Shown here: in pieces, positions 1-48,307 of the stretch
Position numbering within the stretch: the first letter of the stretch is position 1
How the letters are laid out: every line of letters starts with the position of its first letter
Source of the DNA: Geosiphon pyriformis uo1
Taxonomy: Eukaryota; Fungi; Glomeromycota
Assembly: GCA_016748015.1 (NCBI GenBank)
Contig: JAAOMT010000597.1
Location: forward strand, 372,001 to 436,000
Reading direction: 5' to 3'
Length of the DNA stretch: 64,000 nucleotides
The notes under the pieces: generated by a model
The model's input: only the letters and a program-made list of their open reading frames with translations
Told to the model about the DNA's origin: nothing
Databases searched by the model: none
Made by a program: the position numbers and the translations under genes

Positions 1-495
1 CAATTGCAAGTTAGTATCCCGTCAATAGCCATAATCAAGAGCTATTGTTTCAGTGTGGTTAAGTATCAATTACTATCAACATTTCATGTTGATAGTAGAG
101 AGTTGATTGAGATAGTAAATAATTATTTATTAATATTTGTGAATTAAAAGATTGCTTAGATAAAATCTAAACTGAAAGGTCTGTCTTTTCTACTTCTAAT
201 GCTACCACTATATATACATAATTTAAGTTCTATGAAATCACTTATATTCTCGAGCAATGTGCTATAATTTTTCAAACAATGCTCACATTGCTAAGCAATG
301 TGCTATATTTTCTTGACATTGCTTTATCTTGCTGAGCAATGTACTATGATTTTTGACATTGCTCCACATTGTTAAGCAATGTGCTGTAATTTCTGACATT
401 GCTTCATATTGCTGAGCAATGTGCTCACATGCTAACTACTACTCTCTTATTGGTCTGCTATTTTTCTATATCTGTTTTCTTTTTTCTAAGTAACA
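1..495 (-). repeat. 3' LTR of A (partial)
   Basis: Matches ~9193-9688; ends GTAACA at 495 next to the PPT. Confidence 0.95.
252..424. repeat. U3 ~40-bp tandem array with ACATTGCT-N-AGCAATGT palindromes (A type)
   Basis: About 5 AGCAATGT units; same array at 9445-9617. Confidence 0.9.
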
Positions 496-510
496 TTATC
501 TCCTCTTTTT
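496..510 (-). promoter_or_regulatory. Polypurine tract of A
   Basis: AAAAAGAGGAGATAA immediately before the 3' LTR on the minus strand. Confidence 0.85.
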
Positions 511-1145
511 TAATATTGAGCTTCATCAAAATTTTTGTTTTGAATTAATTCTAATACTTCTTTTTCAAGTATTGTTTGTTCAACTCTGTTTCTCATGTCT
601 TCTACTTGTGTATTGTTCATTCTTTCTTATTGGTTAATGGTTATAGTTTCCATGTCAGAATGTAACAGTATTTCTGGATAGTTCCGAAATATGTTGTATA
701 GTTGGTATATTGTTTTAACATGTAGTGTTGAATTCATTTTCTTTTCAATAAATTTTTCAATTTGTTGTATTATGTCTTGGTTGAATATTCTCTTGGATTT
801 GTTAATATACAACTCCTGAATATTCAACTTTTGACCTAATTAGTAGTAGTAATATGATATTAGAAGTTGTTCTGTTCATTGCTTCCAATTTTCTTTTGTA
901 AGCTCTTCTGTTGGTGCCATAATAGGTATTTTCCCAAAAGTGTTCTTCACTTTTTCTATTAAGTTATCTGTCCAGTTTTTATCATTTTTTGGTGGCCATT
1001 AATATGGTGTATTTTTTGTCTTTCTTTGGGTGTTTTAATAGCAAATTATTTGGTTGTTAATAATAATTTCCATGTCTAACTGTTGTTGACTTAAGGCTTA
1101 GAACAATTGTTGAGCTATAGTGTGAATATGATCTGATATTTCCAT
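510..1145 (-). pseudogene. ORF3 of A, ~211 aa protein of unknown function, with internal stops
   Basis: ATG at 1145 (MEISDHIHTIAQQLF...) to TAA at 510-512 (...NFDEAQY); includes track ORF 627-827; homologous to 47669-48307. Confidence 0.8.
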
Positions 1146-1200
1146 TTTTCTTGGTTGCTTTTGTCATGTATACTGTGTCTTTATATATTCTTTTGGTTGT

Positions 1201-2583
1201 TCAATTTAACGTGTTTGGTTTGATAACTATGATTGGTTCTAGATCTCATGGAATCTTATCTGATTGAACTAGTATTCTTTATATTCCTAGTTGTGAAATA
1301 TTATTGGTGGATGATAATGCTATCTGGTGATATGGTTTTAGTTGATCATTATGTGCTGCTTTGGCTAAGATTTTGTTGTCTCATCTTAATTTATAAGCTC
1401 TATTTCTTAGAATTTCTTCTATGTGAAATGGTCCATTTTATTTGGGATCAAATTTTCTACTCCATTGTTTTTCTACTTTGGTATAATATAATAATACTTT
1501 GTTTTTAATCTTGAATTCAACTGGTTTATCTGGTAGTTGGTTATCATGTCATTTTTTTTGCTTTTCTTGTGACTTTTGGATATTATCAGCTGTTTTTTGT
1601 CATCTGTTTTCTAGTGTTTCCATTAAGTCATATGTTCTTCTCAACAATGTTTTTTGAAAATTATTTTCTATTATTGGCTCAGTTGGATATGTATTAACCT
1701 CTATCTCAACTGATAATGTTGCTGTTCTATTGTATACCAATTCAAATAGTGTTGCTTGTGTGGTATCTTGCTTCATTGTCTAATAAGTAAATAATACTGA
1801 TGGTATAAACAAATTTTATTTGTCTTGGTTTTCTTGACTGATTTTGGCGATGGCTTCACACAATGTTTTGTTAAACCTTTCGACTAGTCTATTTGTTTGT
1901 GGATAATATAGTGATGATAATAATCTTTTTATCCCAAATCTTTGACTTAATTCTGTCAATGTTCTATTTACAAAGTGAGTTCTTTGATCTAATAATAGTT
2001 CTTTTGGACATCTATATTAACATATCAAATCTTGATAAATGAATTTGGCAATGGATTTTGTATCTACTCTTTGAATGGCTTTTGCTTCTGGCCATTTTGT
2101 GAGATAGTATATAGCTACTGCAATATATCTGTTGTCTTTGCTGGTTATTGTTAATGGTCTGACCAAGTCAATTTCAATGTAATCGAATGGTTGTCCCACT
2201 CTGATCAGTTTCAATGGTTTACTGGGTTTTGTTCCACCTTTTCTTTAACAAGCATCACAATTTTGAACATAATAGATAATGTTTGAATACATTAATAGCC
2301 AATAGTATCTTTTTCTAGTTCTTTCCATGATTGCTTCTTTATAAAAATGTCCTGCTGTTGGATCTGAGTGCATGTTGAACAATATTGTCTCTTTTTCTGG
2401 TTTTGTAATTACTCTTGTTGGTTGGTCTGAAGTTTTTCTGTTTTTCCAGTAAAGTATATTTTGATAATTGATAAAATATTTTGATTGTTGTTTTATGTTG
2501 TTTTGTTTCTTTTGAGATAATTTCTCTTTGAACAATTGGGTATTTATATAATGTTAAAGTTGTTGGTATTTTTGTATATTTAT
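1201..2583 (-). pseudogene. Integrase of A (HHCC, DDE, GPF module; no chromodomain)
   Basis: HSDPTAGHF..CDAC, PFDYIEIDLV..YLTKWPEA; 461 codons, the same span as in F. Confidence 0.9.
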
Positions 2584-2613
2584 CTTTTGTTATATTTTTG
2601 GGTTGAAATGTTT

Positions 2614-5600
2614 TTAGATTTGTCTTATTCACGACAGTCCATTAGCATTTCTATTGTCTTTTCTCTTTTTATAATGTACTGTATAATTAAATGATGAAAG
2701 TTCTATTTTCTATCTGGCATGACAATTGTCTCCAAATTCTTGTTTCTGAATTGAAGTCAATTCTTTGTGATCAGTATATACATTAAACTTTTGACTTAAG
2801 TATTTTTTTTATTTGATAATAGCCCAATAGATAGCTAAGTGTTCTAGTGCTGGAGTTCTATAGTTTTTTTCCGCTGAACTTAAGCTTTAGCTGGCATATG
2901 CTACTGGATGTTCTCTTCTATCTGGTCTTTTTTGTAATAGTACTGCTCCCAATGCTTGACTAGATGCATCAGTTGTAATTATGAATGACTTGCTGTGATC
3001 TGAATAGATTAGTACTGGGGCTTAAATAAGTTTTCTTCTCAATGTATCAAAAGCTTTTTGTTGAGTTTCAGTCCATTCATATTTGGTGTTCTTTGTTTGA
3101 AGTTGGTGTAATGGTTGAGCTATTTTGGAAAAGTCTTTGATAAAGCAGCAGTAGTATCCAGCAAATCCTAAGAATGCTCTCAATTCTGTGAGATTATTTG
3201 GTACTAGAAAGTTCTTAACAATCTCAATTTTGTCTGGATTTGTTTTGATTCTATTTTTGCTTACCACATGTCCCAAAACTTGAGTTCAGTTTTTCTAAAG
3301 AAACATTTGGTTGCATTTAGTTTCAATCCAGCTCTTCTTAATCTTTTGAACACTTGTTGAAGATGATGCAGATGATCATCAAATGTTTTTGAGAACACAT
3401 TGGTGTTATCCAAGTATACAACTACTGATTTTTATAGTAATCCAATATAGACAATTTCCATGAACCATTGAAATGTTGCTGGAGCATTCATCAAGCCAAA
3501 TGGCATAACTTCAAACTCAAAATTTTCCTCTCTTGTAGTAAATGCTGTTTTCTCCTTGTTGTCTGAGTTTATGGCTACTTGTCAGTAACTACTATCTAAA
3601 TCCAGTGTCAAGAACCATTTATTTCTTCCAAAAGCATTGAATAGTTCTTGGATTTTTGGAGTTAGATAACTATCACCTTTAATCATTCCATTCAGTTTTC
3701 AATAGTCAACACAAAAACAGATTTTTCCATTCTTCTTATGGACCAGTACCACTGGTAATGACCATGGGCTTATTGATAGTTAAATTAGCCTATTGTCAAG
3801 CATCTGATTGATTTCTTGATAAATGATTTCATGGCTAGCTGGTGGTATTCTGTATGCTTTTTGTTTAATTGACATTGCATCTCTAGTCTTGATTTGATGC
3901 TAGATGATGTTGGTGTGGCCAAATTTATTTTCACTAGCAAAGATGTCATTGAAATTGCTAAGTAACATCTTTAATTGCATCTGTTGGAGTGGATTTAGAT
4001 TTCCTATGTTTATTTGTTCTAATTGTTCTGGTTGAAGCAGATAACATTCACTTCATTTATAGATGGTTTGTGATGTAATGTCCACATATTCACAAAGCTG
4101 TGGAAAATCTGGAATGTGGTTTGGTGGTTGATCCTCAACTTTGGTGGTTAAATATCCAATAATGGTTCCCTTTGGTATTTTAATAACATTTCTGGTTGTG
4201 TTGTAGATGAGAATTTTAATGTTTTTGGGGCTTTTGGCTGATATGTAAAGATTAGTGAGTTCAATCTCTCTTGATTTGCAAATGGTAGCTTCTGCTTCAA
4301 ACAACTGAGCTTGATTCTTTACTTCTCTTTTTATGGCTAATATATACTAATCATATGGTAGAATGGAAATGGATTGACAAGTTGAGATAATTTTTCCTTT
4401 GTCATATTAACTGGTACAGCTATTCTACTTATTGATCCAAAACCCTGTATTTCTCTAGCTGTAATCCCTAATTCTTTTCTGTTTTTCACTAATACTAATT
4501 GAGCTACTTTTACCAGAGGCAGGAATATTGCTTGTGCTATTTTTTTACTTGGCTTTATGATATAGGCCTTTTCCGAATCATTTTGTAGCATAGCAATAAT
4601 ATTTTCTACATATCCTGCATTAATTATTTCTCTTCTGATGTTAACTTCCTTTCTGGCTAAGCTACTCCTAGATGCTAACTAAACCATTGTTGTTGCTGGA
4701 ATTTCTAGTGCTATTTTAAGATCAATGCAAGTGCACAAATGGGGTTTTAATTTGATGGAATTTTTTCTCAGATATCTCAGATTAAACCTTGTATCTGTAT
4801 CATGCACACATTCTGGCATAATGCCTTCATTGTTGTCACTATACTATTTGAGTTTTTGTTCCTTGAAAAGATCAGAAAGTATGATGTATGTTTTGGGGTT
4901 TGAATCAGAGTTCAAATTGCTATTATTTTCTTTGCTATATTGAGTAGAACTGGAACTGTTGTTTTTATCATCATTATTGTTGGTGTTTGAATTGGGATTG
5001 TAAATTGATTCTGATTCCAATGTGCAGCTGCCAATTGGTTTTTCCTCTTCTGAAATTGTGTAGGTCATACATAATGGTGAATTGTAAATAAGTTTATACT
5101 CATTACAATATTAGAAGTCACATAGTCTTGTGTTTATTTCTTCTAACCATTGCTCTTATTTCTTTCTAGTAGATGCTAATTCCTGGTAGTGTTCATGGAA
5201 TTGCTCTGGATCCAGGAGGTTTATGACTGGTTCTGGGTCCCAGTCAAGTTTTATGAGTTCTGGTGGGTTGTTTTTAATTGTCCTTATTTTTTCTGGTAAC
5301 ACTCCTTCAATTTTGGCAATTGTCATTCTTTATATCTCATTATCATTGTATGGACAACTGTCTAATTGCTGTATGGCTCTTTTCCATGTGGCTTCTATTG
5401 GTGTTTCTTTCTTAATCCAGTCACTGATAAGAATCATGTATTAACACGAAGTGTCACACATTTTTTCTTGACCAGGAATGTCGTTCCACATTCCTTCATC
5501 AAGTAATGTTTCTCCACAAGCTAAACAAGGTTTGTTGTCCCATTTTTCTTGCTGTTTTGGACGTCCAAAGCATTTTATGATGCATGCATGGCAGTAGAAT

Positions 5601-8600
5601 TTGGTCACTGTTAAGTATTCCTTATTGTTGCCACAGCATATGCCCATTGACAACAATTTCTTGCCACAATCAATGCATATGAGTTTTAATTGATAATAGG
5701 TGAATTGTTGTAGGGTAGTGTAGATGTAGTCATTATAAGTAGTGGTTGGTGTTGGATCTTTTTTCTCCTCTTTCCCTTTTTCTTTATTGTTAGCTTTTTT
5801 CCATTTCCACATTGTTATTTTGTCTTGATTGTTGTTGGTTTTTCAGGCTCAGTCGGAATTCTAAGTAGGTTCTTCTTTCTGCTTTCCTTTGTTGTTATTG
5901 TCCCAAAAGAATATTGGTGGCAACTCATTGTGGTTTTTGTCAGCCCAAGACACTTGATAGGCTTTCCAGATAGGTTTTTTTTCTTCTTCCTCAAACCCAA
6001 TAAGAGGTGCTAACATATTGGTTAGCTTGAAGTGGTCACACATAGCTGGTACATGTGTGTGGCAACTGTTTTGGCTAAGTTAGAGCTCTTGCATCATCCA
6101 GTCCAGTATGGCATTGGTTTTAGACAACCAGTTATTTCCTACTAATGCCTAATATTGAGTTGCTTCCATTACTAGGACTTTAATGGGAGTGATAATACTA
6201 TTAACTTCAAAAGAAAGTCATCAATTTCACTAATAAGAGTTTTGGTTGCTTTATCAGCAGTGATTATGTGACCACTAGCAGTGTAATCAACTCAGCAACC
6301 TAATTGGTCCATGAATTGTCATGTAATGATCCTGCCAGCTGATCCACTGTCTAGTATCAGTTTAATGGTGTGACCATCAACTTTTGTGTCAGTGTACATG
6401 GTGGTAATCAGTTTGGTGTTAAGAGTGGCTCCACTGAATAATAAAACTGGTGTGGTTTCCTCTAATTCAAATGGAAAAATTGTGGCTAGCAATTTGTCAT
6501 TGGTTACAGTGGCTGGAGGTATATTGTTAGTAAGTAGTTTGTATTGGTTGGGTTTCTGGTTGTTGGGTAAGGTGTTTTCTGAGATAACCAGAAGACTTAA
6601 ATAGTGTTGGACATTCAGGTTTTGGGAGTTTCCAGTGCCCGAATTCCATTGTCGATATCTTGATGGTTGTGTTGTAAAATTGGAGATTGGTTAATGGACC
6701 ATCATCAATGATATCCAGCTTTGTTGTGCCAGTTTTGGTCTTTGTGTTCTATTTTAAAGTAAGTTTTGTGGCAGTGTTTGAATTTGTAGGGGCTGATAAA
6801 TTACCTGGGGCTGTGGCTGATAAATGGGTTGGGATTGCAGGTGATAAATGACAGGTGCTGTTGGCTGATAAATTGGTAGTTAATAAATTTGCAGCTGCAT
6901 TATAAGTATGTAATTTGGTTGATATATTTCTGTATTTGACTGATAACTTGGAGTTAAAAACCTGCGATTGGAGTTTTGATATTGATTTTCTGATCATTGA
7001 TTTTCTATTCTTGACTGACAATTGATTTTCAAATGTCTTTGTTTATCACAGTAGTGGCAGATATGCGTCTTTTGCTGCCATAGTTGATTAGATAATGATG
7101 AGGAACACCACTGATTTTGTGAATGATTTGTGATTCCTAAATTATTGCATTATTGGGATAATTGATAAATTGTGTGATTGTTAGCTAAGTACCCTTCAAG
7201 CTTCTGGTTAATAGAATCACTGAATTGTTTCAATTTAGAATCCAATTCAGATGATCTATTCATTACTAGATTTACAGTTTGGGCATGATTAGCTTTGAGT
7301 TTGGCTGCTTTAAAATCTCTGGTGTTAATAACTGCAGCTTAAAGGTCTGTTGGATATATTGGGTGTACACGTTAGAAGATACTACTGTGCAGTCCTTTGA
7401 TGAATTGATTTAAGATTTGTGGTGCTGTAAAATAATCTGCTTGGATTGCTTGTATTTGGCACAGATTTCTATAAAAGCATCCTAAGTACATAGTGACTGC
7501 TTCATTTTCTCTTTGCTTAATGATGATGAAAGTATTTGCCAATTGGTTGATGCTATTATTATTACTAAAATATTGTAGGAATGCAAGCTTGAATGTATTA
7601 AAATCCTAGGGTTTGTTGGCTAGGCTTTGATACCATAAGTTGGCGGTATTCTGAAGAAAATAAGGGATGGCTTGGAGGGCTCTTACATCATTTTATCTGT
7701 TGGTTATGATGGCCTTTTTAATATCATTGAGCCATATTTGGGCATCGTTTTCTTTACCTGTAAACTTTTCTAGTTTCACTATTGGAGCATAGATCATTGG
7801 ATCTAAGTTCAGTTGTTGTTGTGGCTGTTAAAACAGCTGTTGAGATTGTTGAAGCAGTGATTGAATAGGTTGCTGAAGAGGTGGCTGGGGGATTGGTTCA
7901 AGTATCAGTTCAATTGGTGGCTGGTCAATGACAATTATTAGAAGTAAGTTTTGCTAATTAATTGCTTCAGAGTTTGGATTGTTTTGCATTTGCTGGGTTT
8001 TAATGTTTGGAGTTTCAACTTCTGGATTTTCTAAGATCGAGTTCTGGTAAGTAAATTCTTGATCTTCGGCTTCTTCTTCTTCTTCCTTTTCTAATTCTGT
8101 TATCTTCCAGGGACTTGCATTTCCGAAATCTGGTTGGAGTGGCAGTGATCAGAATCTTGATGGTGTTAGAAATTGTGATTTAAATCCTTCAAAGTAGTTG
8201 CTGTAAATTTCTAGTAACTCTGCTTTTTTTTGTTTACTTTAAATGAGTGTTGACCAAATATTAATGTCACGTGTGATGTGAACACGCTTGTTAATGAGAT
8301 GTTGATGGTGTTTTCTGAGATGTAATAGTATGATGAGTTTGTTGAGAATTCAACTCTGGTTTTTTTCCAAGTATGTGGTTGTATTTGTTTTAGTGTCTCT
8401 GTTGGTATTTGTAGTTTTCCTTTTTTTTTGTTTATGTAGGTAATTGGGAATTGTTGTTGTGTGTATCTTTTAATAATTTGATTGATTTCCCTGATGATTG
8501 GTGCAAAACTGTAGTTTCTTGGTAAGCTAGTATGTTGAAATAGTTCTGTATAGAAATTTTCTCTTGCAGATTCAATGTTAACTGCTCCTCCTAAGCAGTC

Positions 8601-8744
8601 TGTGATTTTATCATTGATGTAGAAATTAAAAGCAGATTCTGCTAGAAAGTGGTTATTGTTTAGTCCTAATTGTTGGCTGTATTGTTGAAACAAGATTTTG
8701 GCGAATCCTAAATGGTTTGCTTCTATGTTTTCTGATTCTGCCAC
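2614..8744 (-). pseudogene. gag-protease-Cys-rich-dUTPase-RT-RNaseH polyprotein of A (decayed)
   Basis: Gag KLEKFTG/WLND and a CCHC knuckle; LDSGSAG near 6340; YLDN near 3410; RH TTDAS near 2970. Confidence 0.9.
4430..4815 (-). pseudogene. dUTPase domain of A
   Basis: SRSS, IINAGYV, KIAQAIF and REIQGFGS motifs. Confidence 0.9.
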
Positions 8745-8787
8745 TTTTGGATAATTGCTGTTGGTGCTGGTTTTCTGTAGGATTATA

Positions 8788-8804
8788 TCTCACAGGAAGC
8801 ACCA
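8788..8804 (-). promoter_or_regulatory. Primer-binding site of A (consensus TGGTGCTCCCTGTGAGG)
   Basis: Starts TGG 2 nt after the LTR end; same motif in B, F, E and G. Confidence 0.9.
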
Positions 8805-8806
8805 AA

Positions 8807-9688
8807 TGTTACAGATAATTATTTGGGGTCTCAAATCAAATAACAAATCCATAACTTGGTGCTTGGTTGTTGATATCTAAAGGGTTTATGGATCTGAAAG
8901 TCTTTGTTGTAAAGTCTTTTGTATAATAAACAGAGATTTAATTGATGGTTTTATCTGTAGCTTTTCAAAACTGCAGTTTTGTCAAATTTTTTTCTTAGTA
9001 TGGTGGCCAGTAATCCTTCTGGTAAGCTATTCTCAAATCTATGAGTGTTCTATTCTTGTTTCACAGATCTTTTACCAGTCCCTATGACGTCTGTATTTCA
9101 GCACTTAATTTTTAATCAATTTAGTAAAACCAAAGAAATAACAAAAAAAGAAAACAAAAGAAAACAAAAAAAAATACAAAAACAAGTAAAAGCAATTGCA
9201 AGTTAGTATCCCATCAATAGCTATGATCAAAAACTATTGTTCCAGTGTGGTTAAGTATCAATTACTATCAACATTTTATGTTGATAGTGAAGAGTCGATT
9301 GAAATAGTGAATAATTATTTATTAATATTTGTGAGTTAGAAGATTGCTTAGATAAAATCTAAACTGAAAAATCTGTCTTTTTTTACTTCTAATGCTACCA
9401 CTATATATACATAATTTGGGTTCTATGAGATTGCTTACATTCTCGAGCAATGTGCTATAATTTCTCAAACAATGCTTACATTGCTGAGCAATATGCCATA
9501 TTTTCTTGACATTGCTCTATCTTGCTAAATAATGTGCCATGATTTTTGACATTGTTCCACATTGCTAAGCAATGTGCTGTGATTTCTGATATTGCTCCAC
9601 ATTGTTGAGCAATGTGCTTATGTGCTAACTACTACTCTCTTATTAGTCTGCTATTTTTCTATATCTGTTCTCTTTTTTCTGAGTAACA
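8807..9688 (-). repeat. 5' LTR of A (882 bp)
   Basis: TGTTAC..GTAACA ends, TATA box near 9405, U3 array 9445-9617. Confidence 0.95.
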
Positions 9689-12600
9689 TTGCCTAGGAAT
9701 GTTATTCCATATTCCTTTATTTAAAAAAGTTTTTCCACAAGCCAAGCATGGTTTATTATCCCATTTTCCCATTTGTTTTAGTCTTCCAAAGTGTTCAATA
9801 ATGTATGGACAGCAATAAAACTTAGTTGCCATCTGGTATTTCTTGTTGTTGCTACAGCATGTGCTCATTGATGACAATTTCTTGCCACAATCAATACATA
9901 TGAGCTTTGATTAGTAATAAGTAGATTGTTGTAGTGTAGTGTAGGTATAGGAATTATAAGTGATGGTACTGGTGGGTGTTGTTTCTTTTTCTTTTTTTTT
10001 TCTCTTTCCCTTGTCAGTTTTTTCTTACTCCCAAGTTAATGATTTGTTTATGTTATTATCAGTTCTCCAGACTTGGTTGACATTTCAGATAAGTTTTTTT
10101 TTTTGTTTTTCTTTTCTGTTGTTACTCTAGGAAGGTATTGACAGTAACTCATTGTGGTTATCTTCAGTTCATAACATTTAATAAGCTTTTCAGGTAGGTT
10201 TCTTCTCTTTTTCCTCAAACTTAATAAGTGGTGCTAGTGTGTTGGTAGTCTTGAAATGGCCACACATGACTGAGATGCATGTGTGTTGATTATTCTGGCT
10301 AAGTTGAAGCTTTTGTATGTTCCAATCAAGCGTTGTGTTGGTTTTGAACAGCCAGTTATTGCCAATGAGTGCTTGGTATTGAGTGGCTTTTATAATTAAT
10401 ACTTTAATTGATATGATGATGCTATTGACTTCAATGGGTAGGTCATCTATTTCACCAATTAGAGTCTTGGTGGCTCCATTAGTTGTAATTATCTTTGCAC
10501 TGGCAGTTCAATCAACTTGGCAACCTAATTGGTTCATAAGCTGTCTTGTAATAATGCTGCCAGCTAATCCACTATCTAGGATTAGTTTGATAGAATGGCC
10601 ATTAATTTTGGCATCAGTATATATCACAGTGATGGGTTTTTCCTTGAGGGCAGCTCTATTAAACAAAGAAACTTCTGATGGTTCTTTGATTTCAAAGAGA
10701 AATATAGCTACAAGTGACTTGTCTTCTATAATGGTAGCTGGTAAAATGTTACTAGTAAGTATTAATTGTTGGTTGATTTCTGGGTTATTGGATTGGGCAT
10801 TTTCTGGAGTAACCAGGAGACTTAAATAGTATTGGAAATTCAGGTTTTGTGCATACCCAGTTCCCGAATTCTAAGACTGTAATCTTAATTGTTGTGTAGA
10901 GAAGCTGGGGATTAGTTGGTAAATAACTATTGCCAATCTCCAATTTTAAGTGACTTTTTATCTAGGGTTTTTTAATGTCATCTGAGCTGAGTTTGATGAT
11001 AGTGTTTGAATTGTAAGTGTCTAATAAATTATTTATGGCTGCAGTGGTTGATATATTACTTGTGGCTATGGTTGATAGATTAGAGTTTGATATATGGTTG
11101 GTTGATAAACAGACTGTTGTGTCATTAGCAAGTAAGTAAATTAGTATTAATCTTAATTTGCATAATAATTTGGCATTTGAAGTCTGTAATCAGAGTTTTT
11201 ATATTGATTTCCCGATCATATGTTACTATAAAAATAGCAGTTAGCTCAGATATGGTCTTGTTTACCACAGTTGTGGCAGACACATGTCTCTGGTTGTCAT
11301 GACTGATTGGATGATGATGATAAACATGACTGATTTTGGAAATGATTCACATTTTCTGAATTATTGTGTCATTGTAGTGGTTGATAAATTGCACAATTGT
11401 CAATTAAGTATCCCTTAATTTTCTGATTGATCAAATTACTAAATTGCTTTAATTTGGAATTCAAGTCAGATAATCTATTTATTACTAGATTTACGGCTTA
11501 AGTGTAATTAGCTTTTAATTCAGCTGATTTAAAATTCCTGGCACATGTGATTGCATCTTGTAGGTTGACTGGATGTAGTGACTGTATGCATTGCAGGATG
11601 CTACTGCATAATTCACAAATAAACTGATTCAGGATCTGGGCTGTAATAAAATAATCGGCATCAATGGCTTGTATTTGGTGCAGATTTTAATAAAAACATT
11701 CTAAGTAAGTGGTGATTGCTTCAGTATCTCCCTGTTTGATGGTAGTGAAGATGTTGGCCAAGCAATTAATACTGTTGTTGTTACTAAAATATCTTAAAAA
11801 TTCCAATTTAAATGCATCAAATGTTTGGGGTTTCTGAGTTAAGCTATAATATCACAAGTCAGTAGCATTCTAAAGAAAATAAAGAATTGCTTAAAGAGCT
11901 CTGGCATCATCCCAGTTATTGGCAGTGATGGCTTTGGTAATGTCATTGATCCATGTTTGGGCATTGTTCTCTTCACCAGAAAATTTTTCTAGCTTTGTGA
12001 TGGGTGCGTATGTCATTTGTGTGATCAGTTGTTAAATAGGTTGCTAAAGTGGCTGCTGTTGAATCAGTTCAATAATCAGTTCAATTGGTGGCTGATTGAT
12101 AATGATTACTGAAGGTAAGTTTTGTTGATTAATTGTTTTGGGGTTTGGATTGTTTTGAGTTTACTGGGTTTGAATGTTCAGAGTTTCAACTTCCAGATTT
12201 TTTAGGATTGGGTTTTGGTAAGTAAATTTCTGATCCTCACTTTTTTCTTCTTCTGATTCTATTACTTTCTATAAACTCACAGTTTCGAAATCTGGTTGAG
12301 GTGGTGGTAATCAAAATCCTGATGGCATTGGTGATTATAATTTAAATTCTTCAAAATATTTGCCATATGATCCTAATAACTCTGCTCTTTTTTGTTTACT
12401 TTGAAATGGGAATTGTCCAAAGATTGGTGTTGCATTTGATGTAAATATGTCTGTTAAAGAAATATTAATAGCACTTTTTAGTGTATAATGATATAATAAA
12501 TTAGTTGGTGATTCAACTCTGGTCTTTTTCTAAGTGGATGGTTGTATCTTTTTGGGTGTTACTGCTGGTGTTTACAATCTTCCTTTGCCTTTGTCTGCAT

Positions 12601-13772
12601 AAGTAATGGGGAATTGTTATTGGGTGTACCTTTTAATAGTTTGATTGATTTCCCTGATGATTGGTGCAAAACTGTAATTTCTTGGTAATCTGGTATATTG
12701 AAACAATTCTGTATAAAAATTTTCTCTTGCAGATTTAATGTTAACTGTTCCTCCTAAGCAGTCTGTGATTTTATCATTAACATAAAAGTTGAAGACTGAT
12801 TTTGCTGAAAAATGGTTATTGTTTAATCTTAACTGTTAGCTGTACTGTTAAAACAAGAATTTGGCGAATCCTAAATGGTTTGCTCTTATAATTTCTAATT
12901 CTGCCACTTTTGGATGATTGTTGTTGATGCTGGTTCTCTGTAGGATTATACCTCATAGGGAGCACCAAATATTACAAGTGATTATTTGGAGTCAAAGCAA
13001 ATAACAAACTCATAACTTGGTGCTCAATTGATATAATGGTGTTGATCGGAAGGTATTGTTATCTGAAGGTTTTTGATTAAGTCTTTTGTATAATAAACAA
13101 AAATTCAATAGTTGTTTATCCATAGCTTTCCAGAATTGCAATTCTGTCAATTTTTTTCTTCAGCTTAATGGCTGGTACTTTTCTGATAAGTAATTTGTAA
13201 TTCTTTTACATGCTCTATCCACTTGCAGAGGTCTTTTATTAGGCAATCTTTGATGTTAATAACTCAGTGCTTTAATTTTTTAATTGATTAGTACACAACA
13301 AAAAAAATAACAAGAAAATAAAAAAAATAAAAAAAATAAAAAAAATTAAAGAAATAAGCCAAGATGATAAAAGTTAGTATTCCATCAATAGCCATGATCA
13401 AAAGCTATTGTTTCAGTGTGGTCAAGTATTAATTACTATTAACATGAAGTGTTGATAGTAAAAAGTAGATTTGAAATAGTAAATAATTATTTATTTTGAT
13501 ATTTGTAATGTGAAAGGTTGCTTAGATTAAATCTAAACTAGAAGGTCTGTCTTTTTCTACTTCTAATGCTACCAATATATATACATAATTGAGATTCCTT
13601 AATTTCTTGGTTTTTTACACCAGGAATCCTGCGATTTTTTATATGAGAATCCTGAAATTCTTGGAATCCTGAAATTTTTTTTGAGAGAAATTCTGGAATT
13701 CCACATTTACTATGGCTACTTCTGATTGGCTAATTTATATGCTAATATACTTCTTATGTTCTATGAGTAACA
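9689..13772 (-). mobile_element. Element B (family alpha), 5' part: LTR, PBS, gag, protease, start of Cys-rich insert; inserted in gag of C
   Basis: Colinear with A 5470-9688; LDSGLAG near 10565; right flank is beta gag. Confidence 0.9.
12970..13772 (-). repeat. 5' LTR of B with GGAATCC/GGAATTCC-type U3 array (13590-13703)
   Basis: TATTAC(=TGTTAC)...GTAACA; PBS at 12951-12967. Confidence 0.9.
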
Positions 13773-16437
13773 ACAGTTACTTCTAAACCAATAGCTAATG
13801 ACTCTATACAACAAAACATTCTGATTGCTCTCCAAGATATACAAACTGCTTTAGAATGAAGAAACAATAACCCATTACTATTATTTAAAGATAATACATA
13901 AGATTCTATTAAATAGTTAGATGACTTTGAAAGAACTGCCACAGCCAACCAATATAATAATGAATACAAGTTCCAAATCATTGGTGGCTATCTTCAAAAC
14001 TCTCCTGCTACTTGGTTCTTACAAAAAACCAATATCAATGCTTAGCAAAAAATCATTAGATGGACACTAACAAATGTTAGAGAAAATAACACTTCTTTTA
14101 CTATCTAGTTTGAAATGAAATTTAGAATTTCTATCTTAATATTTAAATGGCATATGGAATTAGAAAGAAGAACTCAAGGCCCTGGTAAAGTTGTAAATAA
14201 ATATGCCAAAGTTATTAGAAAACTAATCAAACAAATAGACTTTGAAAGAAACTAAACAGAAGAACAGAAAATTTACTCCTTTATAAAAAAATTGAGAACT
14301 GATCTTTTATATGCTCTTTGGTTCTAAAAAACTATTCCATAATAAATATGGCCATTAACTTGTCTAATGAATTAAAAACAACCAAAAAATATACTTGAGA
14401 TTCACACTACTAGTTTTTGCTCCTGCTTTTTAAATGGCTGTTACTTTTTTTACTGTTCAAATTCCAGATTCCAATGAACAATTAATAGATAAACTTATAG
14501 CTAATTTTGTCCAGTTACTAGAACCCTTAGTCTAAGCAGTCAAAGATAATCAACAACCACAAAGATCCAGATTTGAACTTCATTTTAATCAGCCCTAGCA
14601 ATTCTCTTATTAAAGGCAGCAAAATTATGGCCCACCTGTATGCTATCACTGTGGATTAACTGGACACTTTTCTAAAGATTGCAACAATTTTTTATTGCTT
14701 TCTTCAGTTCCTAGAAACAATAACAATTAAACCAACAGAACTATTAACAACAATGCCCCTAATCAAAGACTCAATTATGTTAACATCAATTTTTTTGGAG
14801 AGAATCCTCTAGTTAAAGCCACTGTTTATCAGCCTTTAAACTAATAAGCACACTTCCAAAGATTAAGAGTGCAAGCCAACCAGAAAAAAACCTTTTTTAT
14901 GCTTTTAACCTAATTAATAATGATTATGATATAGATGAATTAGCAATTAACACCTCTGAATCAATAAAAAAGAAAAAAAAAGCCAAGATTGATTTCATTT
15001 TGGACCCAAACAAAGCATCCAAATCAATTGTTGATAACAATAAGCCATCAAAGACTAAAATTTTTAAAAATTTTCCAAAGTTAGAACTCCCAGAAATAGT
15101 ACAAAAATCTGGCTTCTATTTTGTTGTTAAAAATCTCATAAAAATTTCAGCACAAATTATATTTGGCCAACTAATAATTCATCTACAGTTCAGAAAAGAT
15201 CTTTACAAATCATTGATACCAAAAAAAAAAACACCAAAGACCAACAAATGCTCCTGTCAAGCTGGACTTGCTGATAATAACAATATTACTTCTTTAATTT
15301 GTAAAGTCCAAGTGGCTGGTTATTTTATTAGTCTAATTCTAAACAGTAGATCATTTGTTAATGTAATTGCCAAACATTTTCTTGAAGCAATTGGCAGAAA
15401 GATTAATGAGCCTTCTACTTGACCAATGACCAATGTATATGATAACAAGAAGAAAGGTCTGGGTATAGCCAAAGCTGTTTCTGTTCATATCAATGATATT
15501 AGCATTAAAACTGACATAAAGATATCTGAAGTCAAGGAATACACAATAATTATTGACAATAAATGGCTCAAAAGTTTTTCTTGATTATAAACTTTGTAAA
15601 CTAACCATTAGATGTGATAAAAAGCTCATTGTGATTAAGTGCTGTTATTAGACAACCTCTCCAGTATTCAAACAAAACCAAGAAAAAGAACAATTAGATG
15701 AATCAAATAATAATGAAAGTGATAAAAAGAAAAATCAAGAAGAACAAAAAGAAACTGTTAAACTCATTTATACTATTTTCACTAGCAATGGCAAGCCACT
15801 GGACAATGTTAAAGCTAACAAAAAAGAAATTATAGTAAATGGCAAGCTGATCTGCTGGTTTTATTATAATATTCTTAAAAGAACCTTTGATAAAAAAGCT
15901 AATAAGAAAGCAAAATACAGTTATTGGTGACATGGTTCTTGTGTCAAATGCTGGTGTAATAAACCTTTGTATTCCTTTAGTAATGAATGCAAGTCCTGTC
16001 TGATCTATTACAAAGATTGGGAGCCAATTAGTTTAATACCCAAAGAAGAGCTAAAAGAAGTACAGAATTCCTTTGAAAGTGAACCATTTGAAATCCAATT
16101 ACTAGTTGTAGAACAAAAAAAACCTTTTTCTGGAAAAAAAAAAAGACATTGAAAATCTGTTAGCTAGAAATAATCCAGTTATCTCAAAAAAAGACGATAC
16201 TTCTAAATGAACCCATGTGATACAACACACTATTACTACAAAAAAAACTTGTCCCATCTATTTGAAGTCTTATCAATCCAATTGACACAATAATGAATTC
16301 ATCAAAAATGAGATAAACTGAATAAAAAATCTTGGATTTATACAAAAAACCAAGAATAAATAAGCTTTTCCAGTTATAGTGGTATCCAAAAAAAGTGGAA
16401 CTCTATGTTTCTGTGTTAATTACTATTAATTAAATGC
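13773..16437 (+). pseudogene. C gag (CCHC near 14640), protease, Cys insert, start of RT
   Basis: Homologous to G 38925-41628; CYHCGLTGHFSKDC. Confidence 0.88.
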
Positions 16438-17396
16438 TGTTACTGGAGGTTTTTGGTCTCTTTTTTGTAATGTTGTTGATACTTATTTGCTGTGAATTTA
16501 CATTTTCTGGATGTGGTTGAACTTCCAGTAACTGAATTTATCTTCAAATTATCTCCTATAATTTGAACTTGCTGGGCTTATAAGTGGAATGGCCAATTCC
16601 ATGCCAGTTGCTTTATGTAGTTATGTTGTAGTAAACATCAACTCTTTCCCAGGAATTGCTTGTCTGGAAGCTCACTAAAAATGTGTAGTTACTTTGCTGT
16701 GAAAGTCAACTCTTCTACAGGAATCTCGTCTGTAGGCTACCCTAATGATTGTAATAAGAAAAAAAAAGAAAAATAAAAGAAGTGTAAAAGAAATAGGATT
16801 TTTATCAAGGGAAACGTTTTCTATCCAGGCCTGGAATCACTAACAGTTTACTGAAATTGGTAGCTAATCAATTTCGAAATGTTAATTGGGTTTTGGGGAT
16901 TTTCCAAGTGCAATAATTAAAGAATTTGGTTTTTCGAATTATTTGATATTTATTTTTTTTTGTGTGTATAGGAACAGTTTTTAAGAAATAAATCTAAAGT
17001 AAGATACATTTTCTCGAAGAGAGAAGCTCTTCTTTTATACAACTTGTTGTAACACTATTCTATGAACTTGAACTTTGCTATTTTCTACAATTTCGCTGAA
17101 CTAAAGATACATTTCGGCAAACTACAAGTTATTTCGGCGAACTATTAGATATTTTCGATGAACTATCAATTATTTCGGTGAATTTCTACAAATTTTGGCG
17201 AACTTCTGAATGTTACATAGTTCGGGGTATTGCATGATTGATCATCGCAATTAGATTACATTTGTGTTGTGTACAATTTGAGTTATTAATTAAATGATAA
17301 TTTCGGACATTTTTGTTAATGTAATAAGTGATCATTTGGAACAATAATATATGCTAATTAATAATAGGAATTATAAGATAATTTCATCTGGTAACA
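16438..17396 (-). repeat. 3' LTR of D (959 bp), with PPT GAGGAGGAGGTTA at 17397-17409
   Basis: TGTTAC..GTAACA; matches 24713-25273. Confidence 0.95.
17090..17205. repeat. U3 ~21-bp-period array of TTCG-G-CGAA palindromes (D type)
   Basis: About 6 units; same array at 24943-25058. Confidence 0.88.
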
Positions 17397-18093
17397 TAAC
17401 CTCCTCCTCAAAACTGAGCTCCGTTGAAGTCCAAGTACTGTCTGTTATTTCCAGATAATAATCCAAAATTATTGAAGAAATTTGGTCTGAAAATTGTTAA
17501 AATTTCAGTTCTGTGAGCCTTCCAATGTATTGAATCTTCAAAGATTGAAAAATTGGGTTTTGTAGTACGTGTTTACAGGTGTGGAATAGATCATAAAGTC
17601 TAAGGGCAGCTCTAAGCCTGTAGCAACTGTTTGTTGATCCAGCTGTTGTCTTGAATTCATTGTAGAGTTGTTTCTGAATAGCTTCTTTTGTGAGATTTGC
17701 TGTTGTAAGTTCCAGTTTCTATTCATAAAGTGTTTTTCCAATGTGAAAATATCTATAGATTGGAGGATATTCAGTGTTTTCCTCATTGAGACACAGTTGA
17801 AGTTTTTGTTGAATTGTAGCATTTGGTGGAATATTAATTGGAGTGAGCATTAGGTTTTCTCTTAAAGCAAGCTTTAAAAGTTCTGACAGGTAAATTCCAG
17901 TATAACTTCTTGTGTTCTTTTTATACAGGTGATATTTTCGTGAATTTGGGGCTAAATTTGTAACTACTTCTGTTTGGGTATAATTTATGTGGTTTCCAGT
18001 AACAGTAATGGATAATTCGGGTATTGTTTTTAAAACTAACATTAGTTTTTGGGATAATTGTTGAATGTTTTGAGGAATAGTTATTATAAGCAA
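17371..18093 (-). pseudogene. ORF3 of D (~240 aa), runs through the PPT into the LTR
   Basis: One frame with two internal stops: IPQNIQQLSQKL..YRYFHIGKTL..AALRLYDLF..ELSFEEEVMLPDE. Confidence 0.8.
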
Positions 18094-18201
18094 TTGAAAA
18101 TAAAATAAAAATTATTTTGGTGTATGGGTTTTTATGTTATTTTTGTTTTTGTTTTTGTGAGATTGTTTCTAAATTATAAGAGAATAACTAGTAAAATTAA
18201 A

Positions 18202-19587
18202 TTAAGTGTTCAGGTTGGAAGGTTGTTCAATGACAACTATTGGTTCTAAGTTGCAGAGAATATCTTTGGGACTGACCAAAGGGGAATGTATACCAACTTG
18301 TGGAATTAATGGTTCAGGATTGTTTCTGGAATAATAGTGTTTCAAACGATCTCCATGTGCAACTTTTGCTAGGATTTTGTTATCAAGTCTTAGCTTGTAT
18401 GATCCATTGCCTAGGACTTCATGAATAAAGAATGGTCCATTCCATTTATTTTCAAATTTTCCACTCCATTGTTTTTCAGCTTTAGTTCTGTGTAAGAGAA
18501 CTTTGTTTCCAATTTTAAATTCATTGGTGACTGAAGACAATTTGTCATCATGCCGTTCTTTTTGTTGAGCTTGGGAGTGTTCAATATGGGTGGCTGCTAT
18601 TTGTTGTTTTCCTTCCAATGTGCTAAGTAGAGTGTAGGCTCTTCGCTAAAGCATTTCTTGGAAATTGTTTTCATTGATTGGTTGTGCTGGGTATGTTTCC
18701 ACTGTGAAACTAATTGGTAACATTGCCATCCTTCCATAAGTTAAATCAAATGGTGTGTGTTTCGTGGTGTCTTGTTTTAATGTCCTATATGCTAGTAACA
18801 CTGATGGAATAAAGAGATCCCATTCTTGATCAAAATCGGTTGAGACTTTGGCTAATGACTCACACAATGTTCTGTTAAAACATTCCACAAGTCCGTTTGT
18901 TTGTGAATGGTAGGACAAAGACAGAGGTCTTTTGACATTAAATCGTTCACAAATTTCTTGTATCAGGTTGTTCACAAAGTGTGTTCCCTGATCAGATAAA
19001 AGTTCAATTGGACATCCATGTCTACAAATGATGTCTTCGTAGATGAAATTTGCTACTGATTTTGCATCTGCTCATTGAATGGCTCTGGCTTCAGGCCATT
19101 TAGTAAGATAGTCTACAGCTACTGCAATATAACGGTTTCCTTGAGTGGTGATAGATAGTGGTCCGACTAAATTGATACCAACTCTGTCAAAAGGCTGTCC
19201 AACTTTGATTGGATTTAAAGGTTCTGTAGGGCGAGTTCCTCCTCTTCTTTGACAACTATCACAAGATTCGACATATTCGTGAATGTTTTTTCTTATTCAA
19301 GACCAGAAGTAGTATTCTAGTGTTCTTTGAGTGGTGCTATTTTTTTTGAAGTGTGCTGATGAAGGATTCGAGTACATGTTGTATAAAATGGTCTTTTTTT
19401 CTGGTTCTTGTATTAATCTGAGTGGTTTGGTTGGGTTTTTGAAATTTTGATAATAGATAATGTTGTTGTGTAGAAAATATTGTTTGGCTTGTTGTTGTAA
19501 CCGATGTTTTTCATCTGGGGATCAATCAGTTGGGATTGTTAATGTCTCCAAATATTGTTTGAGATTGTTGTAGTTTTTGGGGTTCAT
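18202..19587 (-). pseudogene. Integrase of D, own ATG (MNPKNYNNLKQYL)
   Basis: HHCC-like region, LSDQGTHF, QTNGLVE, KWNGPF; 462 codons. Confidence 0.92.
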
Positions 19588-19636
19588 TGTTTGTTGTTTT
19601 GATGCTGTTAATTCAGATGGGTGTTGGTTTTGTTTT

Positions 19637-27283: not shown

Positions 27284-27947
27284 TGTTACAGGTTGGAGTA
27301 ACAAGCTAATGGATAACAAGGGAGAACAGAATTGTAGGGTGATAGAAATAATCAAAGATGAATTCAACTTTAAAGAGTGAATTGAATGAGTATGGATTCA
27401 ATGTGTGAGATCAGTTTCATAAAATATCTCAGTCACTATTCTTTTCAAAGGTAACTGGAGAATTTGAAGGTAGAGGAATAGTCTGTACTGTCAACAATTA
27501 ATCATCACTAGTATAATTCTATGCCTCACATCAGCACTCTTAGAATTTAATATCAGGTATCAACTTGTGCTTTTCAGTTACGTTTATTCAAATAATCTTT
27601 AAATACTTCATTTAATCATTTCAGAAAAAGGCAGATAAACACCAACAAGAAATCTTTTATCCAAAAGATGTTCAGATACTTGAAGGTAAGGAAAGAAAAA
27701 TTAGTGATAAAAGAATGTTTGAGATAAAAGTTGTTTTATTATATTTCTTTAATTATTGGAACATACATTTTTATAGCTAAGAGACTTATTGCTTATATAG
27801 CTATGAAAAGTGGTCAACAATCAGATCAATGATCAAGTCAATGATCAGGTCAATGATTACTATCTAAAAATAAGTTGGCTAATTATATGACATCAGTAGC
27901 TAATACATGTTGTTAACTAATAAAAACTATGAGTTTCAACCATAACA
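27284..27947 (-). repeat. 3' LTR of E (664 bp; 4 x 12-bp units at 27813-27860)
   Basis: TGTTAC..ATAACA; matches 34279-35002. Confidence 0.95.
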
Positions 27948-28573
27948 TCATTTTCTTCAAAAAAATTGAGCTCCGGCAAAATCAAACTATTTATGGGATA
28001 TTCTAATTAAAGGGTTTTATCTAACTCAAAACTAACTAGTTTGTTAAAGTCTTTTGTGGATAAAATGTATAGTACTTAAGGCGAAATGAGCTTTGTATCC
28101 AAGAGACCAAACTTTTGTATAAGAGTTTTGGCTCTTCTGGCAATAGTCAAAACTCTTAGAACATCCAACCATATAATGCCCAAAATTTCCACTTGTATCT
28201 CAGAAGTTGTTTTCTTCATGAGCTTTATGTCTTCTATGATTTTACCAAGATGACCATAGAGCTCTAGTTGTCTTCCATATAACAAGTTTTTGTCTATGGG
28301 CAAGATTTTTTTAATCATTTTTCCAATTGTGGTGGAAGATACAAGTATTGCTGCTATTATGCTTTCCAACAGATACTTATCTATTTTGCTACCAATTCTT
28401 TCTCTTCTGGTAGTTGTTTTCTTTGGTCTGATAACAGTATGAGTTCTACTGTTGTCAGTTATTGTGGTCTGTTTTCCAATAGTCAGGGTAGCATTTGAAT
28501 AGTTTTTGATCCAATACTCATAGAAAATATAGAAAGCATTTTGAATGTTTTGATCCAGAAAATAATTGTTCAT
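27917..28573 (-). pseudogene. ORF3 of E (219 codons), ends inside the LTR
   Basis: MNNYFLDQNIQNAFY...; same 657-bp span in C (36364-37020) and G (44118-44774). Confidence 0.85.
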
Positions 28574-28614
28574 GTCAATTGAAAATACCTCTGTTTTGGG
28601 AATGGTGCATTTAT

Positions 28615-46789: not shown

Positions 46790-47654
46790 TGTTACAGATG
46801 ATTATTTGAGATCTCAAAGCAAATAACAAATCTGTAACTTGGTGCTTGATTAGTATTCTGGTGTCGATATCTGAAGGTTTGGTTGATCTGAAAGTTTGTT
46901 GTAAAGTTCTTTGTATAATAAACAAAGATTTAATAGTTGTTTCAGTAGTCTCCCGGAATTGCAATTCTGTTAAATTTTTTTCTTAGTGTGGTGGCTGGTA
47001 ATCTTCCTGGTAAGCTATCCTCAAATCTATGAGTGTTCTACCCTTGTTTCATGGGTCTTTTACCAGTTCCTATGATGTTTGTATCTTAGTGCTTAATCCT
47101 GAATCAATTTAGTAAAACCAAAGAAATAACAAAAAGAAATAAAAGAAAATAAAAGAAGATAAAAAAATAAACAAAAGCAATTGCAAATTAGTATTCCATC
47201 AATAGCCATGATCAAGAGCTATTGTTTTAGTGCAGTTAAGTATCAGTTACTATCAACATAAAGTGTTGATAGTGGAGAGTAGATTGAAATAGTGAATAAT
47301 TATTTATTAATATTTGTGGATGGAAGGTTGTTTAGATTAGATTTAAACTGAGAGGTTTTTAACTAAAGGATTCTGTCTTTTCTACCTCTAGCACTACTGC
47401 TATATATACATAATTGAGATTTCTCAATTTCTCAATTCTTTACACCAGAAATCCTAGAATTCCTGAAATCTTGTAATTCCTTTTGAAAGGAATCCTGGAA
47501 TTCTGGAATCCTGTAATTTCTTGTACAAGAATTCTGAAATTCCTGGAATCTTGCAATTCCTCTTAAGAGGAATTTTGGAATTCCATATTTACTATGACTA
47601 CTTCTGATTGGCTAATTTATATGCTAATATACTCTCTATGTTTTATAAGTAACA
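46790..47654 (-). repeat. 3' LTR of F (865 bp; GGAATCC/GGAATTCC array at 47416-47585)
   Basis: TGTTAC..GTAACA. Confidence 0.95.
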
Positions 47655-47668
47655 TTATTCTCTCCTTT

Positions 47669-48307
47669 TTAATATTGAGCTCCATTGATATCTTCCAAGT
47701 CTTCTAACTCTACTTCTCTGTCTTTGAGTATTTTTTGAACTTCTTTTTCAAGAATTACTTGAGTTATTTTGTTTTGTAATTCTTCAAATTGGATGTTGGT
47801 TATTTTTTCCATTTGATTAACTGTAATAAAGTCCATTTCTGAATTCAGTAAGATTTCTGGTCTGTCTTGAAATCTAGTATGTAGCCAATAAATAGCTCTT
47901 GCTTGTGTAGTTAAATTGTTTTTTTTCACAAATTGTTCTAGTTGTTGCAGTATAGCTGTATCAAATAATTATTTTGTTTTATCCGTGTATAAGTTCTGAA
48001 TATTTAAGTATTATCCCAAGTGGAAATAACAAAAATTTCTTGGAAATTTGTGTATCCACTATTTTCATGTTTTTTTGGTCAACTTTTGATATGTGGTGAC
48101 ACTTGTTGATTTTTCTATTGCTAATTTTATTTTCAGAACTATTTTGTTGATAGTGTTTTCTGTTTTCCTTTAACTTTTGTATTTGGGTATCTTTTTGGTA
48201 TCTTGGTATCGAATGGTTTGTTGATTGATAGTAATTTCCATATTCTGTTGTTGAATTAATTGGAATAGTTGTTGTGCTAGTGAGTGAATATTGTCAGTAA
48301 TTTCTAT
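47669..48307 (-). pseudogene. ORF3 of F (213 codons)
   Basis: (M)EITDNIHSLAQQLF..YFHLGxYLNIQNLY..INGAQY*. Confidence 0.82.

Follow-up and report, generated by a model that had tools for sequence, protein, structure and literature searches.

An orphan third gene and the adjoining U3 repeats of Geosiphon pyriformis gypsy-type retrotransposons as a probable 3' cassette

Introduction

Two related retrotransposons in the genome of the fungus Geosiphon pyriformis, here called A and F, are alike across integrase and across the R and U5 parts of their long terminal repeats (LTRs), and differ in what lies between: a small gene that follows integrase (ORF3), the polypurine tract (PPT), and a U3 region with a tandem array of short motifs. 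Why should a gene and a neighbouring stretch of non-coding repeats change together? A preliminary description of the locus answered that ORF3 and the array form one swappable module, in which ORF3 would be a sequence-specific DNA-binding protein co-evolving with its own target sites. Here, we ask what the history of this block is, what kind of protein ORF3 encodes, and whether their joint inheritance says anything about function.

Results

A nest of gypsy-type elements

The window, by which we mean the whole 64,000-nucleotide stretch analysed (positions 372,001 to 436,000 of contig JAAOMT010000597.1), is a nest of Ty3/gypsy-type LTR retrotransposons comprising elements A, C, D and F and two beta copies (Table 1). 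The G. pyriformis assembly that contains it amounts to 128 Mb. The G+C content of the window is 32% and its CpG observed/expected ratio is 0.13; TpG and CpA are in excess, a pattern that points to the decay of methylated CpG and not to RIP.

Paired LTRs, a PPT abutting the 3' LTR and a gag-protease-RT-RNase H-integrase order place the elements in Ty3/gypsy (Metaviridae). Pfam identified dUTPase, RT_RNaseH, Integrase_H2C2, rve and SH3_Tf2-1 domains in the window D element and in locus L033, and the order Ty3_capsid, protease, dUTPase, RVT_1, RNase H and rve in a homologous element on metagenome contig L055; the translation of element A has the same domain order as the latter. The element is tri-cistronic, with integrase and ORF3 in separate frames. 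In the overall account of the locus that we hold to be probable, element A is an extinct Ty3/gypsy-type LTR retrotransposon that has a dUTPase and encodes integrase and ORF3 each on its own. The A family is dead as far as it was sampled (30 copies), and the element population is generally mosaic and mostly dead.

Table 1. Coordinates of the elements in the window and of the features at their 3' ends.
Feature	Position	Strand	Remarks
Element A	1-9690	minus	LTR pair 90.4% identical
A 3' LTR, U3-R-U5	1..495	minus	U5 end at window edge; 90.4% identical to 5' LTR; starts with TGTTAC at 495-490
A R/U5 and TATA region	1..223	minus	Similar in A and F (79%); TATATA at 211-216 by reading the sequence
A/F divergent block: U3 upstream of TATA, PPT, ORF3	224..1171	minus	Delimited by maximum chi-square breakpoints and silent divergence
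A U3 array	253..425	minus	TRF 40-bp unit, x4.3; palindrome ACATTGCT-N-AGCAATGT and a third half-site per unit
A polypurine tract	496..509	minus	Adjoins ORF3 stop codon (510-512)
A ORF3	513..1145	minus	211 codons, then stop; 7 internal stops in window copy; accessory gene of orphan family
A integrase-ORF3 spacer	1146..1200	minus	Contains upstream breakpoint, about 1171
A integrase/RNase H block	1201..3100	minus	Recently common to F: 86% identity, silent divergence 0.17
A 5' LTR	9193..9690	minus	Same array type at 9421-9618, x4.9
Element C	9697-13773		5' half only
Element D	16860-25240		LTR pair 96.4% identical
D U3 array	17090..17182	minus	TTCGNCGAA units, period 20/41
D ORF3	17386..18084	minus	2 stops in window copy; intact at 239 aa in L033, L035, L039 and L041
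Beta copies (two)	27284-35002 and 37671-45457		
Beta1 U3 array	27812..27857	minus	12-bp TGATCATTGACC units
Beta1 ORF	27920..28573	minus	218 codons; in the ORF3 position; no detectable homology to A/F/D family
Element F	~47178-56900		LTR pair 90.9% identical
F U3 array	47450..47561	minus	GGAATTCC/GGATTCC motifs; 40-bp period, x2.8; unrelated to A array
F ORF3	47672..48307	minus	212 codons, then stop; 5 internal stops; ATA replaces ATG

ORF3, the PPT and U3 have a different history from their flanks

Maximum chi-square analysis of A against F placed breakpoints at window positions 224, on the side of the TATA box, and 1171, at the end of integrase. These borders, and the identities of the segments they separate, bear out the earlier observation that similarity collapses through ORF3, the PPT and U3 and resumes at the TATA box: A and F are 79% identical in R/U5 (1-210), 36% in the U3 array (251-430), 62% in the PPT and LTR start, 58% in ORF3 and 86% in integrase (1201-3100). 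Silent differences, counted only at codons that specify the same amino acid in both elements, number 36 of 80 in ORF3 (0.45), 75 of 451 in integrase at 1301-3100 (0.17) and 85 of 204 in an RT block at 3401-4300 (0.42), all three being estimates from single decayed copies whose own LTR pairs differ by about 9-10%. The value for ORF3 is 2.7-fold higher than that for integrase (Fisher p=1.2e-7) and does not differ from that for the RT block (p=0.69); along the element as a whole, pS between A and F ranges from 0.22 to 0.65.

Because the LTR pairs are themselves 9-10% apart, part of the integrase value is decay after insertion, and the integrases of the source elements differed by less. Judged from these copies, the source elements appear to have been deeply different in ORF3, U3 and RT, unlike in integrase. 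By the silent excess in ORF3, the ORF3-PPT-U3 block is of older ancestry than the younger blocks on either side of it, and not just the product of fast drift. Since silent divergence in the RT block is just as deep, A and F are general mosaics, and the collapse of similarity is not unique to ORF3 and U3. Element C has an F-like U3, an R/U5 nearest to that of A (86.8%), and a gag-PR region 71% identical both to A and to F; three topologies in adjoining segments indicate that recombination is pervasive. In the sequence flanking loci L018 and L005, no ORF3 precedes the LTRs of F/C type. The comparison of A with F documents one clean event of cassette recombination and is in itself no test of covariation. 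It is equally possible that the exchanged parts were the integrase and R/U5 blocks, passed between two old lineages.

ORF3 defines a lineage-restricted gene family

ORF3 begins about 50 nt past the integrase stop codon. In both A and F its own stop codon lies directly against the PPT; the frames of D and of the metagenome lineage M1 read through the PPT and terminate within U3. The A and F frames are near-equal in length, as first described, at 211 and 212 codons. Their proteins had been judged about half identical by eye; the measured figure is lower, at 41-43%. None of the 30 A-family copies reads intact, each being broken at different places, and the ancestral 211-codon frame is evident across them; broken copies were read with X at stop codons or as separate open pieces. 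Intact relatives of the A/F type are present in Geosiphon lineages G (P0148/P0154) and E (P0159/P0156). The ORF3s of A and F are each other's closest known relatives, with 29-36% identity to lineages E and G, so that part of their protein divergence may reflect accelerated evolution in place.

The ORF3 of D is a true but distant homologue of that of A and F (hhalign E=7e-5, 23% identity, colinear over 187 columns), and the gap between them is bridged by Geosiphon lineages E and G together with metagenome lineages M1 and M2. In family D, many copies retain an intact frame of 239 aa. Identity across lineages falls to between 16 and 43%, with length and the positions of motifs kept. P0146 and P0147, which represent the metagenome lineages, come from contigs L055 and L056, where the architecture is gag-PR-dUTPase-RT-RH-IN-ORF3. 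In G. pyriformis, 188 annotated proteins match ORF3, homologues being annotated as hypothetical, and only 34 proteins were returned when 1.84 billion cluster representatives were searched with a profile. Among the databases searched, the family is therefore confined to Geosiphon and the two metagenome contigs. Lineages D2, E and G are not represented in the 54 extracted loci or in the window.

Compared in frame, A and F ORF3 give a pS of 0.76 and a pN of 0.31, against 0.55/0.36 and 0.34/0.41 in the two out-of-frame controls, a contrast that shows selection on the protein. At equal silent depth the ORF3 protein has changed two to three times faster than RT (pN 0.31 vs 0.08-0.19). The dN/dS check that had been suggested for ORF3 is informative in this frame-controlled form and uninformative within families: NG86 estimates in the A family give omega of about 0.3-0.4 even in wrong frames, probably as a result of a biased mutation spectrum. 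Low omega in a wrong frame means that within-family omega is not evidence, and only frame-controlled comparisons were used. The D and beta loci were picked by similarity of their ORF3 proteins and are a biased sample for dN/dS. The intact copies, the frame-controlled pattern, the conserved length and the narrow range indicate that ORF3 is a genuine, selected, lineage-restricted and fast-evolving gene family of about 210-245 aa, which appears to be previously undescribed.

The beta elements carry an ORF without detectable homology in the ORF3 position

The preliminary description had paired D and beta with further ORF3 variants and further arrays. Both arrays are present and the ORF3 of D belongs to the family, as above; the beta ORF gives hhalign E values of only 0.3-0.6 against the family, to which it has no detectable homology. 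The beta protein has one strongly hydrophobic segment, which is absent from the ORF3 family members tested. In the beta1/beta2 comparison, an unbiased pair taken from the window, omega is 0.16 in frame vs 0.54 and 0.95 out of frame, which indicates that the beta ORF is under constraint. From its sequence we judge it to be a positional analogue of ORF3 only.

ORF3 is predicted to be a soluble helical protein

Pfam searches with ORF3 at E<=10 gave nothing beyond two rows at noise level, which fell below their cut-offs, and detected no RNA-binding domain, DNA-binding domain or homology to VANC; the best match in a PDB profile search had an E value of 0.26. A usable AlphaFold model of the G-type protein was obtained from a 29-row alignment (pLDDT 74, pTM 0.63), while the D protein, with a shallow alignment, gave an unusable one (pLDDT 44). 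The G-type model predicts a helix and hairpin at the N-terminus, then a disordered linker (41-57), then a helical bundle (58-214). Structure prediction and comparison had been put forward as a check, and the model matches no known fold, whether DNA-binding or of another kind: Foldseek found nothing at E<=0.001 in the PDB or BFVD, an exhaustive VIA search reached a best Z of 6.1, within the noise expected of helical bundles, and the ESM Atlas structure search gave TM values of at most 0.27. A feature search of the ESM Atlas showed low recognition, with weak and unrelated matches. Homodimer prediction scored 0.00 in a run made without controls, a value that weighs neither way on binding.

No transmembrane segment or signal peptide was detected in six family members, in which the maximum 19-aa Kyte-Doolittle mean was 0.4-1.3 and the N-termini were not hydrophobic. 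These absences, together with the soluble helical-bundle model, rule out an Env identity for ORF3. The basic linker contains the motif [RKH]-x2-3-P-Y in A, E (P0159), G, M1 and M2, which, short as it is, suggests a resemblance to PY-type nuclear import signals. Isoelectric points lie between 5.4 and 9.7 depending on the lineage; the family is thus not basic throughout. Overall, ORF3 is predicted to be a soluble, all-alpha protein.

Each lineage has its own U3 array

The U3 arrays of A and F share a 40-bp period and are unrelated in sequence, as the preliminary description had stated (Table 1). Allowing up to 2 mismatches, ACATTGCTNAGCAATGT occurs 8 times in the window against a chance expectation of 0.07, and all 8 occurrences lie in or at the edge of the two LTRs of A. 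In A, F and D the motif is plainly palindromic. The metagenome lineage M1 has a 28-bp array (x3.5) in which a palindrome is not evident, and M2 has a dispersed repeat of the TTGCCCTAG type upstream of the TATA box. Every lineage examined thus differs from the others in its repeated U3 motif, which is palindromic in several of them.

Within families the array type is constant and the copy number varies. Of 30 A-family loci, 24 were found to have the A-type array where it is expected, with between 1.9 and 4.8 units, and TRF output contained the family-type array in 10 of 11 D loci (none from L036) and 10 of 11 beta loci (none from L051). No non-cognate array was seen among the sampled A, D and beta loci. 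Lineage-specific repeats in U3 are usual in LTR elements and retroviruses, where they serve as enhancers read by host factors, and to our knowledge LTR elements without an accessory protein have them as a rule. By analogy, the arrays described here are most simply read as U3 enhancer or UAS repeats recognised by host factors, which is the default interpretation; a cognate regulator would also predict a repeated motif in each lineage.

Discussion

We consider it probable that window positions 224-1171 represent a 3' cassette, consisting of ORF3, the PPT and U3 with its array, that moves as a unit through recombination during reverse transcription. In replication of the retroviral type, the template for U3 is the 3' end of the RNA that receives minus-strand strong-stop DNA at R. 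If that DNA jumped at R onto the 3' end of a co-packaged heterologous RNA, synthesis would then copy the heterologous U3, PPT and ORF3, and a single template switch at the conserved end of integrase would return it to the first RNA. Between diverged lineages there would be no homology for a switch inside the block, except for some 45 nt in the region of the PPT and the start of the LTR. Such a route predicts borders at the U3/R junction and in the integrase-ORF3 spacer, and the observed borders match these exactly. Retroviruses offer a parallel, as copy-choice recombinants exchange a 3' region containing env and U3, for example in the polytropic murine leukaemia viruses. There too, the exchanged block has one end at a crossover that lies upstream of the 3' gene and the other at the U3/R border, as strand transfer at R followed by a single template switch would produce; the Geosiphon event differs in that the gene in the block is not env, and in that it is ancient and visible only in decayed genomic copies.

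Given contiguity and the mechanics of reverse transcription, co-inheritance of ORF3 and U3 is expected, and it is therefore not evidence of functional coupling. Of the idea that the two form one module, the historical part stands, as silent divergence of the block differs from that of its flank (0.45 vs 0.17), and the functional part does not follow from linkage. We suggest that ORF3 most likely acts in the nucleus on behalf of its own element. Binding of ORF3 to the array is possible, yet it is not needed to explain the data.

The proposal that ORF3 is a dimeric, sequence-specific regulator or anti-silencer of its own palindromic array, the two co-evolving as a cognate pair by analogy with VANC or Tas, seems to us unlikely. 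It is favoured by seven lineages, counting beta (A, F, D, beta, M1 and M2 among them), each having a different motif together with a different ORF, and by the palindromes of A, F and D, the A motif lying far above chance. The rapid change of the protein relative to RT at equal silent depth (2-3x) is likewise in its favour, as are the [RKH]-x2-3-P-Y motif of the basic linker, suggestive of nuclear import, and the heavy CpG depletion, which is consistent with methylation pressure on transposons. However, sequence searches of Pfam and the PDB revealed no DNA-binding domain, the AlphaFold model is unmatched in the PDB, BFVD and ESM Atlas, and the spread of isoelectric points is not that of a uniformly basic family. 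The pairing itself is weakened at two of its members, since the M1 array lacks an evident palindrome and homology of the beta ORF to the family is not detectable. Contiguity alone explains the linkage, and U3 repeats occur as a rule in LTR elements with no accessory protein to read them.

It is improbable, in our estimation, that ORF3 instead has a post-transcriptional or import role (RNA export, translation re-initiation, or nuclear import or targeting of the integration complex), with the arrays being unrelated enhancers for host factors. A tri-cistronic element with integrase and ORF3 in separate frames needs a special route of expression, the PY-type import motif is present in most lineages, and the predicted helical bundle has no recognisable DNA-binding fold, all of which such a role would accommodate; against it, Pfam found no RNA-binding domain. 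Divergence in place, with ORF3 and U3 the least constrained parts and integrase and R/U5 held by selection, is very unlikely, for although the A and F ORF3s are each other's closest known relatives and nucleotide identity is as low as 66-75% in other coding stretches under weak constraint, silent sites in ORF3 stand at 2.7 times those of integrase (p=1e-7) and equal those of a highly constrained RT block, the boundaries are abrupt, and a non-coding R/U5 that is 79% identical lies beside an unalignable U3.

The position of ORF3 invites comparison with the complex retroviruses, in which foamy virus Tas/Bel1 and HTLV Tax are transactivators that act on U3. Like these, ORF3 lies between pol and the 3' LTR, beside a U3 with repeated elements, and is not an Env protein. 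Unlike them, it belongs to a fungal Ty3/gypsy element and has no similarity in sequence or fold to viral proteins in BFVD or the PDB.

Modular capture and sharing of ORF3s has been described in LTR elements of bdelloid rotifers (PMC5408684), which resemble those of Geosiphon in bearing a dUTPase and in having non-Env ORF3s downstream of pol as exchangeable modules. In the rotifers, the ORF3 products can be recognised as enzymes or as Env-like proteins (PMC5408684), whereas the Geosiphon ORF3 is an orphan helical protein of one fungal lineage and two metagenome contigs. Gypsy elements containing a dUTPase, placed between protease and RT as here, are reported from Basidiomycota and Ascomycota, with 'additional ORFs', to which no function is assigned, mentioned only in passing (PMC2864245); that report describes neither an ORF3 family nor comparable U3 arrays. 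An expansion of LTR elements has been noted for the Geosiphonaceae in a paper whose text makes no reference to an ORF3 (PMC11952901). What is new here is the orphan ORF3 gene family, extra genes in LTR elements and 3' copy-choice exchange being already known.

A further likeness is to the VANC proteins of Arabidopsis VANDAL elements, which are DNA transposons, and for which binding and hypomethylation were demonstrated by ChIP, EMSA and bisulfite sequencing (PMC5735166). Both systems combine a fast-evolving accessory protein with non-coding tandem repeats that are wholly different between related elements (PMC5735166), and the CpG ratio of the Geosiphon window, a sign of heavy cytosine methylation, suggests a similar host setting. 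The A motifs differ in being confined to U3 and not spread across non-coding regions, and Pfam detects no homology, so the likeness is one of analogy.

In the elements examined, ORF3 always abuts a U3 with lineage-specific repeats, and the gene has so far been found only in dUTPase-bearing gypsy elements of Geosiphon and in the two metagenome lineages. Natural intact copies of the D, beta, E and G types exist, and the idea that ORF3 reads these repeats can thus be tested at the bench without rebuilding a decayed gene. If it were true, plant VANC and the retroviral transactivators would have a counterpart in a fungal retroelement, and the lineages would provide a natural set of protein/DNA-site pairs. 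A cognate system of the VANC/Tas kind would then be without precedent among fungal LTR retrotransposons; its protein would have a new fold, and protein and array would diversify jointly and pass between lineages as a cassette.

Mosaic structure of the A, F and C elements

Comparison of A and F, two of the Ty3/gypsy-type LTR retrotransposons in the window, gave silent-site divergences of 0.42 in the RT block and 0.45 in ORF3, the accessory gene between integrase and the polypurine tract (PPT); in the integrase/RNase H block the value is 0.17. Maximum chi-square analysis placed a breakpoint between the two elements near window position 3440. Element C (9697-13773) is the 5' half only of a third family, and its adjacent segments show three different relationships: the U3 array is F-like, the R/U5 is closest to that of A (86.8%), and the gag-PR region has 71% identity to A and to F alike. 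The A and F elements are mosaics of several blocks. We found no ORF3 for element C, of which the window holds the 5' half. Naive dN/dS on these retrotransposon repeats would yield a false signal of selection. The window-wide CpG observed/expected ratio is 0.13, with TpG and CpA in excess, and Nei-Gojobori omega in this genome is still 0.3-0.4 when A-family sequences are read out of frame.

Conserved and variable features of ORF3

In all lineages the last ORF3 codons are overlapped by a conserved nucleotide stretch, GGAGCTCA..T.TT.A, followed by a purine tract. In A, F and the Geosiphon lineage E this stretch is read as ...GAQY/F-stop; in element D and the metagenome lineages M1 and M2 it is read as ...ELSLEEE.MLP..., with ORF3 terminating within U3. 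Because the reading frame through the stretch varies by lineage, the apparent conservation of the ORF3 C-terminus is conservation of the PPT region and not of the protein. In A, E (P0159), the further Geosiphon lineage G, M1 and M2, the disordered basic linker of ORF3 carries a short [RKH]-x2-3-P-Y motif, and D has YH(P/L/S)Y; the motif resembles a PY-type nuclear import signal. The ORF at the ORF3 position of the beta1 element contains a 19-residue hydrophobic segment (residues 126-144; Kyte-Doolittle mean 2.3) of a type absent from the A/F/D family, and the protein encoded at this position in beta may be of another kind.

Element D also has a 20-N run (assembly gap) at the inner edge of its 5' LTR, and its stretch upstream of RT weakly matches the Pfam family of spumavirus aspartic proteases (E=1.6e-6).

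Coordinates of features in the window and compared loci
Feature	Position	Details
A/F RT block	window 3401-4300	
A/F integrase/RNase H block	window 1301-3100	
Element C U3 array	13623-13701	F-like
ORF3-end/PPT-region stretch	window 496-540, 17386-17420, 47655-47700; L055:10640-10705	
Linker with [RKH]-x2-3-P-Y	window 990-1010 in A	ORF3 residues about 41-57 of G-type model
Beta1 hydrophobic segment	window 28142-28198	
Element D assembly gap	window 24693-24712	
Element D 5' LTR	24713-25240	
Element D protease match	window 20795-21307	
L055 U3 array	10838-10937	28-bp unit x3.5
Fused ORF3 gene models		P0148, P0149, P0157, P0161-P0166, P0171

ORF3 in metagenomes and public gene models

An ORF3 gene also lies downstream of integrase on two metagenome contigs from other organisms, L055 (ENA ERZ25039530, contig_55115) and L056 (JGI 3300032897). 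The order on L055 is complete (gag-PR-dUTPase-RT-RH-IN-ORF3), and its LTR pair has 91% identity. Among the public Geosiphon gene models, those listed in the table join ORF3 either to the C-terminal end of integrase or to unrelated sequence lying downstream, and one of them reaches 1034 aa. Many Geosiphon 'hypothetical proteins' are retrotransposon ORF3 fragments.
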